The notes under the pieces are model-generated. The model saw nothing but the letters and a program-made list of their open reading frames with translations. It had not been told where the DNA came from and made no database searches. Made by a program: the position numbers and the translations under genes. Source: Fonticula alba ATCC 38817 (lineage: Eukaryota > Protista > Nucleariida). Taken from it: a stretch of DNA of 7,896 bases. Shown one piece after another: positions 421-7,128 of this stretch (position 1 is the stretch's first letter; the number at the start of each line of letters is the position of its first letter). The DNA lies in NCBI GenBank assembly GCA_000388065.2, contig KB932239.1; one strand, 5' to 3'.

Positions 421-982
421 TTACATGGGGATTCCACTACAGGTCGCGAGGTGCACGAGGTCACCGAGGCCGCCTGCGGCCTCGGAGCTGGTGGCCGTGG
501 CGTTGGTTCCACGGAGCTCCTCCATCGCCGAAGAAGAAACACCGCCCCTGGCGTTGGTCTCGAGGCGAAGAAGCTGCTTCTGCTGCTGCTGCTGCTGCTG
601 CTGTAGGGCGATTTCAGCACCCGGGGAATGGGAAACGCTGCGGGTCCCCGTGGCGAGGGGCATGTCGATGGCCGATGGGGCCATCCCTGGCGAAGGAGCG
701 CGGCTGGTCGGGCCGCCATTGGCGAGCTGTGCCCGGAGTTGGGCGGTTCGGAGGACCTGGTCAAGTTGCGCCCGGGAGATGCTCCCCCCGGCCACGGTGC
801 CGGCAGCCGGCTGGTCGGCCGAGCCGGCGTTCTGTGACGAGGAAAAGGCAGCCTGGATGCACTGGCGAAGATCGGCCTCACTGAGATCCAGGATGTGTGA
901 GGGAATGGAGATATTGACGGCGGATGGCTGGGTGGACTTGCTCGATAGGTCCTGCTGCGGCTGCGGCTGCGGCTGCTGCTGC

Positions 983-1057
<75 letters not shown>

Positions 1058-1570
1058 CGGAGCTGCCAGAGCTGCTGCACCTGCGCCTGCTGCGCCTGTT
1101 GCTGGAGGATGAAGGAGGCATCGGATGCGGAATCGACCATATCCGCATCCTGACTGGGGACACTTGTGGAGCCGGGTTGGAGACTGGCAGTGGGATTGCC
1201 GTTGCTGGCACCGGCCGACGGCTCAATCAGAGAAATCAGCCCGAAGGAATGGTGTGCACCGGTGCCTGGCAGTGGGGGCCGGGGTGCCTGCTGCGCCGCC
1301 AGTGGGCCGGACACCGAGAGCATAGACACACTGGTCGAAAGGGCCGGCGAATCGGGTCCAGAAACAGAGCTGGCTGTCGGCGTGGCGGCAACATTGCCTC
1401 GCTGTCCGGACAGCAGCTGGGCTTGCGATAGGGCGCGCATTTGTTCCGGAGATAGATTCGGCAGAAGCTGCTCCAGGATTGCCTGCAGGGGGATGGTTGC
1501 CACCTCGGGCTGCACACCAGCCATGGCAGTCTGTCCATGTGGGAGATTCAGCTGCATCTGCTGCTGCTGC

Positions 1571-1602
<32 letters not shown>

Positions 1603-1603
1603 C

Positions 1604-1680
<77 letters not shown>

Positions 1681-3190
1681 CTGAAGGAGGGCCTGGATGA
1701 AATCCGACCGAAGGAGCGCAGACTGCTGCTCCAAGAGCAGGCTCTTGGCTGCTGCATCTTCTGAAGATACGGTGCCATCGAAGGAGCCGCCGTTGCCGGG
1801 TGCCGAAGCATAGGACTGGCTGAAGAGCCCATTGCCGCTGGCTGACGGCCCGGACACCTGCATCGCCCCGGCATCCAGCGGCGAAACCGCCCCACTGGAG
1901 GAGGAACCCGCCGCCAACGAAGTGCTTGACGATGAGGCTGACAGGAGGCCCCCGGGTACGCTGCCGAAGGCCCCAGGCCCCGGCGACGGGGTCGACCCCG
2001 GCGTCGGGGACATCATCAGTCCCGAGAAGGGCATGTCCAGGAAGGATCCCGGTCGGCTGCGAGAAGCGGCCGGCTGGGATTGGGCAGCCGCCGCCGCGGC
2101 CGCCTCGCTGATGACCTCCAGTCGAGCAATGCTCGAGGCAGCCTGGAGCTGGCTCATGCGTGCCGGGGAGGAGCCCCGCCGGTTGCGGTTGATTGGCGAG
2201 TGACTGGACAACCGCGCGGCGCTGGTCATGGTGGAACCGACCCCGGCACTGGCAACCACCGTGGTCTGGTGCGAAGGCCCGGCGGCCGGCGGCCCGGCCC
2301 CGCCGGGGGCCAGGTCGCTCGCCCCGGCGCCCGCCCCACCACCGAAGGACGCCTGATGGCTGGAGGTCATGCTCGGGAGGGAGAAGCGTCGAGTAAAGCG
2401 CCCCGTCGTGGCGGAAATCCCATGAGGCCCGGAGCCCGGCCCGCCGGCATGCTGATGGGCCCCCCCATGGAAGGAGCCCGGGCTGGGGCCCGAGCCACCG
2501 GCGAAGTGGCCACTGGGCGAGGCAAAGTGCGCAGACGCACTGCCAGGCCCCGGCGAGGGGGTGGTCGTCAGCAAGCCAGACACCGCGGTCGGGTTCATGG
2601 TGGCCGGCGAGGAGCTGGCCGACTTGGAAGAGGTCAGCCCGCTGCCCCCGGGGCCGGCGGTGTACAGCGGACTGACCAAGGGGCTGGATGCATTTGCCCG
2701 ATGCACGGCCGTCGCCAGGTGCGCCTGCTGGAAGGATTGGTGCGGCGCATGGCCACTGGCCGCCGGAGCCGAGGGCGGGGGGAATCCAAGTCCCATGCCG
2801 CCGGACAGGGTGCCAGACGCCCCGCCGGCCCCGAGCAGGGTCGACGATGCGGCACCATCGGCCAAGCCGAGCTGCGCCGACGACGAACTCCCAGCACTGC
2901 CGACCGGCGAAGGCATCCCCTGGTGCATGGTGGTCATGTTGCCAGCCTCCAGCGCCCCGGCGTCCAGGGTCTCCAGTGTGGCGACAATCGACTCGTTGCT
3001 GCTGCTCGCTGAGGCAGCAGCCCCGAGAGCCGAGTCGGAAAGGACCGCACGGAGTGCCGGCCGTGTGGCGCTGCCCCCGGTCCCGCCACTGGCGAAGGTG
3101 CCGGGCGGGGTGCCGGTGCCGCTGGCCAGGCCGCCGAAGGGCGAGGCGGCCGCTGCCGTTGTTCCTGCGGCGGCGGGGCCGGTGGCGGGC

Positions 3191-3222
<32 letters not shown>

Positions 3223-3508
3223 TTGCTGTTGTTGCTGCTGTTGTTGCTGTTGCTGCTGGAAGTTGAAACAGCTCAGAGCAAAGAGGTCAACGCCGGGCTG
3301 CTTCGACGAAGTGCCAATGTCGGCCTGCCAGATCCCCGGGCGCGAGGGCATCGCCTGGAGCCCGGGAGAGCCGCCGACAAATCCAAGCTGCTGGAGCTGC
3401 TGGAATTGCTGCTGGAGCTGGGCCTGCTGTTGCTGGGCGGCCTGCATCGTGCCGGCGGCTGGAACTGCCGGCGAAGAGGGAAGTGAGATCGAGACACCGC
3501 CTTGAGCA

Positions 3509-3544
<36 letters not shown>

Positions 3545-4827
3545 TGCTGCTGTTGGAAGGCCAATTGAGCGGCGTTGGAGATGCCACTGTGGCTGGTGGG
3601 CGGACTTGCGTTCCCGAGCGCAGGCGATCCCATCCACCCGCCACCCGGGCCGAGCCCGGTCAGAGCCCCGCCATTCCCGATGAGCAGCTCGCCCGGGGGG
3701 AATTCCATGGCCACCAGACCCCCCGGAGCCGAGAGGGACCCACCTGCGGCCACGAGCCACGCGGGATTGCCGCCGGCCATCGGGCCGCCGCCGACCAGTG
3801 ACTGAAGCATGGCCGCCGCCGGGCCATTGCCCGGGGTCTGGCCAAAGGGCAATGGCTGGGCGGCCATCGAGCCGGTGGCCATCGCCCCGCCCGGAGGGAG
3901 GGCCACTGTCGGAGAGGAGGCCGACGAAGCGCCAGTCGAGGCTGAGCCGCCACCGGTCAAAAGCCCGATGCCCGGAGGCGCACCGCTGGTCCCTGCCGTG
4001 GACGCTGCCGCTGCCGCCGCCGCCGCCGCCGCCGCCGCCGCAAATTGCTGCAAACTTCCCTGCTGGAAGAGCTGCGGCGAGATGAACTGCGACTGCTGGG
4101 CCGAGGGGTCCGGCTGCGACTGGGACTGCTGGTGCTGGTGGTGCTGCGGCTGCGGCTGCGGCTGCGGCTGCGACTGCGACTGCTGCTGCTGGGCCGTGGA
4201 AGAAGACAGGCCTCCGCTGGGGGCCAAGGAATAGACCGCCGGCAGGACCAGACCGCCGGCTTGGTCGGCCGGCGACACGGGAGTCTGGCCAAAGGGCGTC
4301 GAGGCTGTGCCCGACCCGCCGGGCATGCCGCCAAAGAAGGGCATGCCCTTGAGCATGGCACTCGGGTCGTGCAGGGGGAATTGCATGCTCGGGTTGGGAT
4401 ATGCCTCGGACATGGCGAAGCTGGCGCCCTGGGGAAGGGTCCCGCCGGGGCCGAAGAAGAGCGGCGTCATCTGCGGAAGACCGCTGCCCGGGTGGTACAT
4501 GAGCGAATGCTTGCCGGAGGTCGAGGGAGGCGGCTTGGTGCCGCGCACCGAACCGGGCCCGGCATCGGCCGATCCGTGGCCATTGCTAATGAGCCCCATG
4601 ACCGTGGCCGAGAGGGGCTTGTCGCCGTGCGTGAATTGGCCATTCTTGATGCTCTTCAGCTGCTGGTTGTGGATGACCGTGATGTGCTTCACCAGGTCGG
4701 GGTGGCGCTTGAAGGCGGTGTTGCAGAAATCACACGAGTGTGGCTTGCCCTCGATGTGGCAGTCAACATGGCTGACGGCATTGCTCCGAGTCTTGAACGG
4801 CCGTCCGAGCCGGTCGCAGCCCTTCCA
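421..4827 (-). CDS. Coding exon 3 (1468 codons + TAA): rest of finger 2, finger 3 and a Q/A/S/G/P-rich C-terminal region
   Basis: Acceptor CCCCAG|TGG AAG GGC TGC at 4828/4827, in the frame of the 1555-aa track ORF from its residue 88. Stop TAA at 423-421. Confidence 0.85.
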
Positions 4828-6034
4828 CTGGGGAGATTGTGTTCGAGGCGAGGAAAGGCGGCAGGGAGGTGAGTGCTTCGGCATTTTGATGATGCAAAAT
4901 GGGGAGGGGGGCCGGCCATGGGAGCGCGCGGTTGCATCCCCCGTGATGGTGGTGGGGGCGGGGGGGCGGGGGGGGGGGATGTCGGCGGTGGTCGGCGGCG
5001 CACCTTGCATACGAGGCACCGGTTCTTGCCGGCCACGGTGCCGATGTGCTCGGTGCTGATGTGGCGGCGCAGCTGGCGGCAAAAGCATGGTACGACATGT
5101 TAACAGAAGGAAGCACCAGAGGGAGACGTGGGAGGGCTGAGAGAGAGGCAGAGGGGAAAAGGAAGGCAGAGGCTAAATGGGGGAGCAGAGGCACGGAGGA
5201 GGGGGGCAGCAGCAGCTGCGGCATGCGGGAGGGCATGGCTGCTCCGCCCCCCCCCCCCCCCCCCCCCCCCTGGTGACGATGATGGCGCACCATCTCCGTC
5301 GAATTGAAGAGCATATTACAGCCCTGCCACTCGCAGAATTGCGACCCCTCGGGGATTTTGGGCTTGTCGGAGCCGGAAGTGGGCGAGCCGCTGTTCGACA
5401 CGGGCGCCGAGTGGCTTGGGGTGGTGGCCACGCTCGGGCCAGACTCGTGGAGGACCTCCTCGGCCGGTGTCGGGGAGGGGGACTTCACCGGGTCCGAGGC
5501 CTCCAACATTGAGGTGTCCAATGTCGGGGAGGACAGGCTCGAAGAGCTACCCGTCACCAGCAGGCCACGATTGCCCGCAAGGAGGGGGAAGCTGAGAGCA
5601 CCATGCGCGGTCTGTGGGTCCTGGGGCTTGTGGCCGGGAGGCTGCTGGCCGGGAGGCGACGGGTGGCTCGGAGGCTTCTGGTGGTCCCGGGGCTGCTGGG
5701 GCTGGGGCTGCTGGCCGTGAGATTGCTCCGCCTCGGGGTGCGGCGGAGACAGCGCCACATTCTCGGGCTGCTGGCCCGGGGGAGGGAGAAGCTTGCCTGT
5801 GCGCAGGTACTCCGCGGTCAGGAGGAAGTTCGCCGGCAGGTGGGAGCCGGAGGAAGTGGCAGGCAGCGATGGTGACGGAAGGGCACTGCGACTCGGGGTG
5901 TGGTCATTCGTCGAGTGGGTGACACGCATCGTCGGCGAGGAGAGGGCCATGATGGCCTCGATGGACTCGGCCAGCTGCTCATCGGTGTCCAGCGGCACGG
6001 CCGTGCGCGGGGACGCAGCCGGGGCCACCGCGGG

Positions 6035-6066
<32 letters not shown>

Positions 6067-6571
6067 GGGCGGAGGAAGACCCGGACTCGGCCGCGCAGGT
6101 GCGCTCTTCGGCATCGCCCATTTCCACATCGGCGCCGGACCAGCCGGCCGGTGGGATGGCATTGCGGGCGGCGGCAGACGCCGCGGCCATGGCCGCCACG
6201 ACGGCTGCCACCGAGGAAAGAGGGCCGCCAGAGTCGATGATCGGGGCGGGCGGCGAGGAGGCCGTGCCGTTGGTGGTGTCCTCCTTGGGGATCATGCTGA
6301 AGGAGGCAATCACCGAGGGAGGCAGCTTGGTGGCCAGGGTCGCGGCGTCGAGGAGCCCGGGGGACACGGGCTCCGATCGGGGCGGTGTGGCGGTGCTTGA
6401 GCCACTTAGACCGGCCTCGGTCGATCCCACGGTCAGGGGCTTCTGCGAGGCGAGGATGCCGACCTGCGAGGCGGCCTCGCCGGAGGCAGACTCCTCGGGC
6501 GAGGTGCCTGGCGAGTGGCGCGCGGTGGGGTCGGGTGCCCCGGTGGCGGGGAGGTTTCCAGGAGCCGACAT
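421..6571 (-). CDS. Spliced gene, join(complement 6571..5291, 5072..5004, 4827..421), about 1918 aa: PacC/Rim101-like three-finger C2H2 (tandem CWCH2) transcription factor with long polyQ/low-complexity regions
   Basis: Seen: removing two GT-AG introns gives one frame (1281+69+4407 nt) and rebuilds CEWQGCNMLFNSTEM|LRRHISTEH-IGTVAGKNRCLV-CK|WKGCDRLGRPFKTRSNAVSHVDCH-IEGKPHS-CDFCNTAFKRHPDLVKHITVIH, i.e. CX4CX12HX4H, CX4CX15HX3H, CX2CX12HX4H. Knowledge (recalled): Rim101 ZF1 CKWDNCGMIFNQPELLYNH; PacC ZF3 [21 protein letters not shown] (15/21 identical). Orthology, the start codon and the absence of further introns in exon 3 are unverified. Confidence 0.85.
580..603 (-). repeat. (CAG)8 encoding Q8
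   Basis: 8 CTG triplets on the + strand. Confidence 0.9.
952..1056 (-). repeat. CAG repeat encoding Q24 followed by PQQQPQPQPQQ
   Basis: CTG run at 985-1056 (one TTG interruption), then CTG/CGG alternation. Confidence 0.95.
1558..1683 (-). repeat. CAG/CAA trinucleotide repeat encoding Q42
   Basis: 42 consecutive CTG/TTG triplets on the + strand, in the CDS frame. Confidence 0.95.
3190..3258 (-). repeat. CAG/CAA repeat encoding Q23
   Basis: 23 CTG/TTG triplets. Confidence 0.95.
3511..3555 (-). repeat. CAG/CAA repeat encoding Q15
   Basis: 15 CTG/TTG triplets. Confidence 0.95.
4003..4041 (-). repeat. GCG/GCA repeat encoding A13
   Basis: CGC/TGC triplet run, in frame. Confidence 0.9.
4828..5003 (-). 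other. Spliceosomal intron 2 (176 nt, phase 0)
   Basis: Donor AAG|GTGCGCC, C-rich run, branch-like CACTCAC (4875-4869) and acceptor TCTCCCCAG. Removal restores C-K-W-K-G-C of ZF2. Confidence 0.9.
5004..5072 (-). CDS. Coding exon 2 (69 nt, LRRHISTEHIGTVAGKNRCLVCK): end of finger 1, linker and first Cys of finger 2
   Basis: Bounded by CAG acceptor (AG 5074-5073) and AAG|GTGCGC donor (5003). It supplies exactly the His pair needed to give ZF1 a 12-residue C-to-H spacing. Confidence 0.9.
5073..5290 (-). other. Spliceosomal intron 1 (218 nt, phase 0)
   Basis: Donor ATG|GTGCGCC, G24 run, pyrimidine-rich body, branch-like TGTTAAC (5105-5099) and acceptor GCCGCCAG. Removal restores ZF1. Confidence 0.9.
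5291..6571 (-). CDS. Coding exon 1 (427 codons): S/P/A-rich N-terminus ending in the first half of zinc finger 1
   Basis: ATG at 6571-6569. The frame is open to CEWQGCNMLFNSTEM, followed by donor GTGCGC at 5290. Beyond this point the track ORF reads through a poly-G intron as low-complexity sequence. Confidence 0.8.
6035..6064 (-). repeat. (GCC)10 encoding A10
   Basis: GGC x10 on the + strand within exon 1. Confidence 0.9.
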
Positions 6572-6583
6572 GTCGGGTTCTCT

Positions 6584-6925
6584 CTGTGGCCGGGGGGCAC
6601 ACGGGCTGGGGGGTTAGTTTTTGTCGGGCTCTTTTTTGTGTGTGTGTGTGTGTGTGTGTGAAGGACCAAGTGGGGAGGCCCGGCCGCCGGGCGGCTTCCT
6701 TCGCACCATATGACGGGGGAGAGAGAGGGGCCGGCGAAAAAAAGATGCTGGGTCTAGGCTCGGCCTGTCTCCCTTTATCCGCTTTCCGACGGCGCGGGGG
6801 TCTGCTATCGCCACATTTCGCCGGAGCCACGGCACATAGGGGGCGGGGTGCATGGGTGTCAGCAACATGGCCGGGGACAGGAGGCCGGCAGAAGGAGGGA
6901 GGGCCGAGGGCAAGCATGTACGGAC
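6584..6925 (-). other. Candidate 5' UTR intron ending 12 nt before the ATG (donor uncertain: 6925 or 6706)
   Basis: Branch consensus ACTAAC at 6618-6613 and CAG acceptor at 6586-6584. Possible donors are GAG|GTCCGT (6925) or ATG|GTGCGA (6706). Confidence 0.4.
6637..6660. repeat. (TG)12 dinucleotide microsatellite
   Basis: Read directly. Confidence 0.95.
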
Positions 6926-7128
6926 CTCTAGCTCAATGAGCGGCGAGGATGGAGACGAGGAGGGGCGTGGGGAAAGGAAGGGCAGGGGGGGGGGGTGATA
7001 TTCCGACGATGTGGATGCGATCTGGCGGCGGCGGCGGCGGCGACGGCGGCGACGACGACGGCGACAGCAGCAGCAGAAACAGTAGCGGCGGTGATGGCGG
7101 CGACGGAGGTCCGGAGAAGGAGGAGAGA

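Follow-up and report, generated by a model that had tools for sequence, protein, structure and literature searches.

PacC/Rim101 and the Pal/Rim pathway are described as fungus-specific (for example, in PMC4393102). PacC is one of several classes of proteins that carry a tandem CWCH2 (tCWCH2) pair of zinc fingers (ZFs). The hallmarks of such pairs, as defined by Hatayama & Aruga 2010 (PMC2837044), are that each of two neighbouring C2H2 fingers has a Trp between its Cys pair, that a V, L, or I (or M) directly follows the first His of both fingers (ZF1 and ZF2), and that the linker is long (11.8 ± 4.4 amino acids) and not of the TGEKP type. According to the same work, an extended ZF2 with R..(K/R)PF is found in Zic, Gli, Glis, Fungl-4ZF, a Rhizopus Fungl sequence, and ZafA, and its class alignments show that the ZF2 of Aebp2 is also long, with PacC as the short-ZF2 exception among tCWCH2 classes. 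Here, these classes are compared with a three-finger gene on the minus strand of a 7,896-nucleotide stretch of DNA (hereafter, the window) from Fonticula alba ATCC 38817, a nucleariid amoeba that resembles slime moulds and belongs to a lineage sister to fungi. The window comprises the first 7,896 bases of contig KB932239.1, in an assembly of 31.3 Mb (GCA_000388065.2).

The Fonticula gene is probably a PacC counterpart outside fungi. On balance, the evidence inclines towards a divergent relative of the PacC lineage that has retained the long ZF2 general to the tCWCH2 classes. It reads as a gene without the pH-signalled proteolytic control of fungal PacC, no evidence of such proteolysis having been found in the protein and genome searches described below.

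A tandem CWCH2 pair assembled by splicing

The finger region lies at 5335-4669 on the minus strand, bounded by the opening base of the first Cys codon and the closing base of the last His codon. As the initial annotation had proposed, three C2H2 fingers appear there only after splicing, which removes two introns. Reading along the minus strand, CEWQGCNMLFNSTEM is followed by an intron that starts with GTGCGCC and ends with CAG. The 23-codon exon LRRHISTEHIGTVAGKNRCLVCK comes next, then a second intron, again starting with GTGCGCC and ending with CAG, and finally WKGCDRLGRPFK, from which the frame stays open to a stop codon at 423-421. Both introns, at 5290-5073 (218 nt) and 5003-4828 (176 nt), are of the GT..AG type and in phase 0.

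The RNA check suggested for these junctions was possible with public contigs of transcript type, obtained in a 2012 study from two samples, which lack both introns and carry exactly the predicted joints. A 611-nt contig (sample X1, record 1) corresponds to 5366-5291, 5072-5004, and 4827-4362, ungapped and with no added letters, while a contig of the second sample (X2, record 8) joins 5291 to 5072 and, past 5004, carries the 4827/5004 joint too. A genome search found the sequence in one genomic copy only; the intron-less contigs therefore come from spliced RNA and not from a retrocopy. Two raw RNA runs under another organism's label (X12, X13) yielded no aligned reads and carry no weight on the splicing. 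The gene is expressed and has at least five exons. Its finger domain, numbered on the 1918-residue protein model, is composed as follows.

5046..5335, minus strand (coding 5335-5291 and 5072-5046, across an intron): ZF1, aa 413-436, CX4CX12HX4H, with Trp415.
5010..5045, minus strand: ZF1-ZF2 linker of 12 aa, ending N-R-C-L-V, where PacC loci have N-L-(N/C)-L-T.
4756..5009, minus strand (coding 5009-5004 and 4827-4756, across an intron): ZF2, aa 449-474, CX4CX15HX3H, with Trp451 and R..GRPFK.
4669..4734, minus strand: ZF3, aa 482-503, CX2CX12HX4H, with FKRHPDLVKH.

Between ZF2 and ZF3 there is a spacer of seven residues, IEGKPHS. The protein has exactly three C2H2 fingers; a motif count over the whole model found a fourth nowhere. 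In the spliced product, a Trp stands between the Cys pair of both ZF1 (C-E-W-Q-G-C) and ZF2 (C-K-W-K-G-C), the first His is followed by Ile432 (H-I) in ZF1 and by Val471 (H-V) in ZF2, and there is no TGEKP link. Judged by these sequence features, ZF1 and ZF2 are a tandem CWCH2 pair of the class described by Hatayama & Aruga.

Likeness to PacC/Rim101

PacC sequences for comparison were collected by running a degenerate DNA pattern for KPH-C--C---FKR--DL-KH over metagenome contigs. This gave at least 120 loci, and every match listed is a canonical PacC; a protein search started from one of these open reading frames (ORFs) returned 1,165 matches, named 'pH-response transcription factor pacC/RIM101' by their sources. 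Among the matches listed, ZF2 is CX12H with KRDH(I/V)TSH in all loci that have this finger in frame (100/100), which bears out the earlier description of PacC ZF2 as CX4CX12H as against CX15H here. In these loci, ZF2 reads C-W--C, then 12 residues with KRDH(I/V)TS at their end, then H---H; ...KPH-C--C-K-FKRPQDLKKH comes next, and ZF2 is preceded by HVGRKSTNNL-L-C where the upstream frame is intact.

Sixteen distinct complete PacC finger domains were used for pairwise comparison and for a profile, with the spliced Fonticula domain joined from the window sequence. The PacC profile matches the spliced domain with 77 bits over positions 1-85 of 87, a likeness far above chance. Run over the whole genome, it ranks exon 3 of the finger domain first on its own (40 bits, E 1.5e-8); the other matches, at 39 bits or less, are ordinary C2H2 pairs without the Trp pair. 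The gene is the best PacC-like locus of its genome. Over 87 columns, the domain shows 38-44% identity to the 16 PacC domains; the alignment has a single 3-residue indel, in ZF2, and the two histidines of ZF3 are one residue further apart. It keeps 30 of the 43 columns that are invariant in PacC, including 16 that are not Cys, His, or Trp. In a finger-only alignment, 10 of 17 invariant non-Cys/His/Trp columns are kept, compared with 4-6 of 17 in three other tCWCH2 genes of the genome. In a profile-profile comparison, 39 columns that span the ZF2 helix through ZF3 align to full-length PacC, with 49% identity and a probability of 96.8%.

Three fingers, a tCWCH2 first pair, a 12-aa linker, a seven-residue spacer with KPH at its end, and a CX2C ZF3 are all features of PacC as they are of the Fonticula gene. 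The PacC-like linker, finger count, and ZF3 recognized in the initial annotation are thus borne out, the linker being 12 aa long in all 16 complete PacC domains and FKR--DL-KH being common to both. Of the PacC linker consensus H-VGRKSTNNL-x-L-x-C, the Fonticula gene keeps G, one N, L-x-C, and the optional C, and loses the invariant R, K, second N, and one L; the string N-x-C-L-x-C-K-W-K-x-C is common to it and to basidiomycete-type PacC loci (L090, L112). Of the ZF3 consensus KPH-C--C---FKRPQDLKKH, it keeps KPH, CX2C, FKR, DL, and KH, and loses P, Q, and one K. At -1/+3/+6 of the canonical helix numbering, ZF3 has R, D, and K, identical to those of PacC. On these sequence comparisons, PacC/Rim101 is the nearest of the families compared.

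Two further observations concern the PacC set itself. It includes a divergent intron-less group of 1000-1100 aa on metagenome contigs (L046, L064, L065, L086), with a 5-residue insertion between the Trp and the second Cys of ZF1 (C-L-W-TPPDKPP-C), KKKRDHVTSH in ZF2, and IEF instead of VPL before KPH. Precomputed annotation lists Pfam PF28334 on nearly all PacC proteins P0001-P0120.

Departures from canonical PacC

Several observations weigh against placing the gene with PacC. The first concerns the fingers. ZF2, with TRSNAVSH, is three residues longer than that of PacC, and its residues at -1/+2/+3 are T, S, and N, compared with K, D, and H. ZF3 ends in HX4H, whereas PacC has HX3H, and differs from PacC at +1, +2, and +5. 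In the Fonticula protein, which has about 1920 aa, the domain also lies at residues 413-503, while that of PacC is near the N-terminus.

The second concerns regulation. In PacC, PalA docks on two YPXL/I motifs that flank the signalling-protease box (PMC10301932), and YPSL or YPVL stands at the end of the PacC ORFs taken from metagenome contigs; a motif scan found no YPX[LIVM] anywhere in the Fonticula protein. By hhalign profile-profile comparison, nothing outside the fingers aligns to full-length PacC. Six-frame family searches of the genome found neither PalH (PF08733), in a search that had no positive control, nor a calpain domain (PF00648), and such exon-wise searches can miss genes. BRO1-domain genes are present.

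Intron positions form a third group of observations. The comparison of intron positions called for in the initial annotation was run against PacC loci and revealed none in common. In 34 metagenome loci (e.g., L011, L013, L016), PacC has a phase 0 intron, ending in CAG (AAG in one), directly before [DE]H-C--H of ZF1; the intron in ZF1 of the Fonticula gene lies two codons further 5'. Basidiomycete-type PacC loci break ZF2 just before VHTPL and not at C-x/W.

The tree of tCWCH2 domains that had likewise been proposed was run with PacC and the genome's own paralogs only (maximum likelihood, concatenated fingers, 68 columns; 16 PacC domains, the window gene, and three paralogs). It is saturated, its terminal branches having reached the upper limit, and leaves the gene unplaced. 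A tree in which all fungal PacC are held together with the gene excluded is 3.5 log-likelihood units worse and is not rejected (approximately unbiased test, p-AU 0.18). Finally, PacC ranks as closest in a comparison that drew on PacC sequences, a small number of PDB chains, and a published alignment read by machine. By sequence, then, the gene is not a canonical PacC, and it is not nested within the sampled fungal PacC because 13 residues common to all of them are lost.

Other tandem CWCH2 genes and the question of a separate class

These departures give weight to the main rival explanation, namely that the gene represents a separate tCWCH2 class, lineage- or nucleariid-specific, whose PacC-like ZF3 and linker reflect convergence or shared ancient characters instead of orthology. 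Only about 40% of residues are identical to PacC, and the 13 of 43 invariant columns that are lost include the whole ZF2 recognition helix. Neither a PacC regulatory region nor Pal parts were found, with the limit on the PalH search given above.

The genome holds at least four further tCWCH2 genes, one of which is particularly relevant to this explanation. The paralog on contig C2 (~3,455,000; L008) has three fingers, a tandem CWCH2 pair with ZF1 CKWGDC..., a 14-residue ZF2 loop, and a ZF3 with CNIC, that is, CX2C with HX4H. Its ZF2 is interrupted by an intron between C-Q and W-R-G-C, at the identical place to that of the window gene. This combination of the same ZF2 intron, three fingers, and an HX4H ZF3 suggests local expansion of a family. 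The C2 paralog is unlike the window gene in its 5-aa linker, and the two are only about 30% identical. It gives no match to the PacC profile at E <= 1, which counts against a separate class.

Word-index protein searches can also be read in favour of a separate class: with the finger part of exon 3, against candidates of 330-1050 and 807-2569 aa, they recovered no homologue, and missed the gene's own product too. Other searches bear on neither side. An exhaustive search of representatives with 4621-4827 on the minus strand returned poly-zinc-finger proteins in all of its best 150 matches (6-36 stretches, identities of 26-39%, scores of 96 bits or more), a result uninformative on true relatives. 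The ESM Atlas look-up gave generic C2H2 clusters only. Pfam on single exons gave generic finger matches below threshold only, with PF23561 on ZF2 at 22.8 bits, under its cut-off.

Against a separate class stands the combination of a 12-aa linker with N-x-C-L-x-C and of KPH-C--C--FKR--DL-KH, which is common to all sampled PacC; these linker and ZF3 strings were not seen in the other classes of the published alignments (PMC2837044). With both sides considered, a separate class is regarded as rather unlikely, and a divergent PacC-lineage gene is the reading preferred here.

The remaining tCWCH2 genes of the genome are of varied type. A gene on contig C14 (~10,000; L005) has a ZF2 of CX4CX15H with GRHFRK. 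A second gene on the same contig (~209,000; L001) resembles the published 'Fungl' class, with a CX4C third finger and HTKER/PF, and passes Pfam PF23561. In both L001 and L005, the ZF1-ZF2 linkers are about 80 residues long. Another tCWCH2-type gene is located on contig C4 (~2,414,900; L003).

GLI, ZIC, and the long second finger

The exon-3 part of ZF2 aligns without gaps to ZF2 of GLI1 (14/30 identical; PDB 7t91) and of ZIC3 (11/29 identical). Setting aside multi-finger proteins that sum many weak matches, these are the best PDB matches. The GLI1-like character of ZF2, with its R..RPFK, is therefore real. So is the likeness of ZF1 to both Rim101 and GLI1, with 11/26 identities to PacC and 13/26 to GLI1 by hand count. 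To call the domain a mosaic, as the initial annotation did, is fair: linker, finger count, and ZF3 are PacC-like, and ZF2 is of the long form.

The same annotation went further and suggested that the gene could retain an ancestral opisthokont state that links the fungal pH regulator with the animal Hedgehog effector. This suggestion was not supported, for the long ZF2 also occurs in Zic, Glis, Fungl-4ZF, and ZafA. For a by-eye comparison, the alignments of the Gli, Zic, Glis, Fungl, Fungl-4ZF, ZafA, and Aebp2 classes were machine-read, with visible errors, from PDF supplements 7 and 11 of PMC2837044. Because it is seen in Zic, Gli, Glis, Fungl-4ZF, the Rhizopus Fungl sequence, ZafA, and other Fonticula genes, a long ZF2 is, at the sequence level, a general tCWCH2 character and does not set GLI apart. 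The gene is accordingly no specific link between PacC and the Hedgehog effector.

It follows the same lines to ask whether the gene is a surviving intermediate that specifically joins PacC with animal GLI, the two being the same ancestral gene. The ungapped ZF2 alignments and the ZF1 identities to GLI1 speak for this. Zic, Gli, and Glis resemble the Fonticula gene in their tandem CWCH2 pair, in a ZF2 of CX4CX15HX3H with R..(K/R)PFK, and in a ZF1 that is about 50% identical in the case of GLI1. They differ in having five fingers instead of three, a CX4C third finger with TGEKP-type links instead of CX2C, and a shorter linker (9 aa in GLI1 and 10 aa in ZIC3, from PDB chains, versus 12 aa), and their ZF2 helix residues A-Y-LV are absent from the Fonticula finger. 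GLI has SUFU as a partner and carries a SYGH-type motif. A motif scan of the Fonticula protein found no S[YF]GH, and SUFU (PF05076) was not found in the genome, in a search where control genomes gave matches. In addition, R..xPF in a long ZF2 is shared with the several classes listed above and with another Fonticula gene, and the 2010 trees of Hatayama & Aruga place Fungl, not PacC, nearest to Zic/Gli/Glis, with weak support (PMC2837044). A specific PacC-GLI intermediate is accordingly very improbable.

Fungal classes with a long ZF2 offer one more explanation, in which the gene is a reduced ZafA/Zap1 or Fungl-4ZF member that has lost its downstream fingers. In the machine-read alignment, on which this comparison draws entirely, ZafA rows show a long ZF2 with R..DRPF or R..GRGF followed by a CX2C finger, and Fungl-4ZF rows show R..KPF-KR; about 7-8 of 16-20 ZF2 positions match, a rough figure counted by hand on rows that contain reading errors. 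Both classes, however, have 9-aa linkers, more fingers, and third fingers without FKR--DL-KH, which in Fungl-4ZF are CX4C. Descent from either class by loss of fingers thus appears improbable, if slightly less so than the PacC-GLI intermediate.

Predicted function

From its sequence, the protein would be a nuclear, sequence-specific transcription factor whose only ordered part is predicted to be the three-finger tCWCH2 DNA-binding domain. By analogy with PacC, GLI, and ZIC, ZF1 would serve as a structural cap and not as a DNA reader, packing on ZF2 through Trp415, Trp451, Ile432, and Val471. The DNA would be read by ZF2 and ZF3, as in PacC, for which the roles of finger 1 versus fingers 2-3 and the GCCARG site have been described (PMC10301932, PMC3618310). 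Since ZF3 keeps the -1/+3/+6 residues of PacC, one subsite is probably PacC-like; since the ZF2 contact residues are not those of PacC, the target site as a whole probably departs from GCCARG. The long flanks of low complexity may act in activation.

Evolutionary implications

A PacC-like finger domain thus occurs in a non-fungal relative, together with a different ZF2, and the receptor, protease, and docking motifs were not detected in the searches of its genome and protein. If the assignment to the PacC lineage is correct, it becomes possible to ask which arose first, the DNA-binding module or its pH-signalled processing. The gene would also provide an outgroup with which to polarise the indel by which ZF2 of PacC differs from that of the other tandem CWCH2 families.

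A more specific proposal is that the gene corresponds to PacC in the lineage sister to fungi and preserves a pre-fungal state, with a PacC-type linker and ZF3, a long ZF2 of the Zic/Gli/Fungl-4ZF type, and no Pal-dependent switch. This is put forward tentatively, as a possibility that we hold to be doubtful. Were it true, the PacC DNA-binding module would be older than fungi. The fungal stem would have gained the pH-signalling control and the KRDHITSH helix and shortened ZF2 by three residues, and PacC could root among the Gli-like tCWCH2 families. The finding by itself makes no connection of PacC to Hedgehog signalling.

Transcript model and protein composition

Transcript contigs also define the 5' part of the gene, which is organized on the minus strand as follows, together with the exons and introns of the finger domain.

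6926..6967, minus strand: 5' untranslated exon with undefined upstream end and an in-frame stop inside; the loose end of the X1 record 5 contig maps from 6928.
6802..6925, minus strand: 5' intron of 124 nt, GT..AG, from a transcript contig, its boundary set allowing a 2-nt ambiguity.
6707..6801, minus strand: short 5' exon of 95 nt, from a transcript contig; the first in-frame ATG, 6709-6707, forms its last three bases.
6584..6706, minus strand: intron of 123 nt, GT..AG, from the joint 6583/6707 in an X1 contig, with splice sites checked.
5291..6583, minus strand: coding exon for the S/A/P/T-rich N-terminal region of 412 aa and the first 15 residues of ZF1, with the ATG at 6571, or five codons earlier at 6709.
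5073..5290, minus strand: intron inside ZF1, after ...STEM, phase 0, GT..AG, missing from X1 record 1 and X2 record 8.
5004..5072, minus strand: 23-codon exon for the remainder of ZF1, the 12-aa linker, and the first ZF2 residues C-K, in the transcript contigs.
4828..5003, minus strand: intron inside ZF2, between C-K and W-K-G-C, phase 0, GT..AG, with the joint 4827/5004 in X1 and X2.
421..4827, minus strand: last exon, for the remainder of ZF2, ZF3, and a Q/A/S/G/P-rich tail of 1415 aa with long polyQ runs; stop codon 423-421.

With the 5' introns removed, an in-frame stop lies upstream, and the first in-frame ATG is the one at 6709-6707 or, five codons later, the one at 6571. The predicted product accordingly has about 1918-1923 aa, the shorter model being the one used for residue numbers. 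Only residues 391-510, approximately, are of ordinary composition. Elsewhere, Q, A, S, G, P, and T together make up at least half of each 40-aa segment, and there are long polyQ runs. The G+C content across the stretch is about 57-75% and falls to 0.57 in the first 500 bases, by the 3' flank past the stop codon.

Both introns of the finger domain contain unusual runs. In the first, there is a 24-base homopolymer at 5247-5270 (24 C on the plus strand), and in the second, long G-rich runs are found at 4950-4985. Aligned reads seem to be cut at 5235-5284, around the homopolymer of the first intron.

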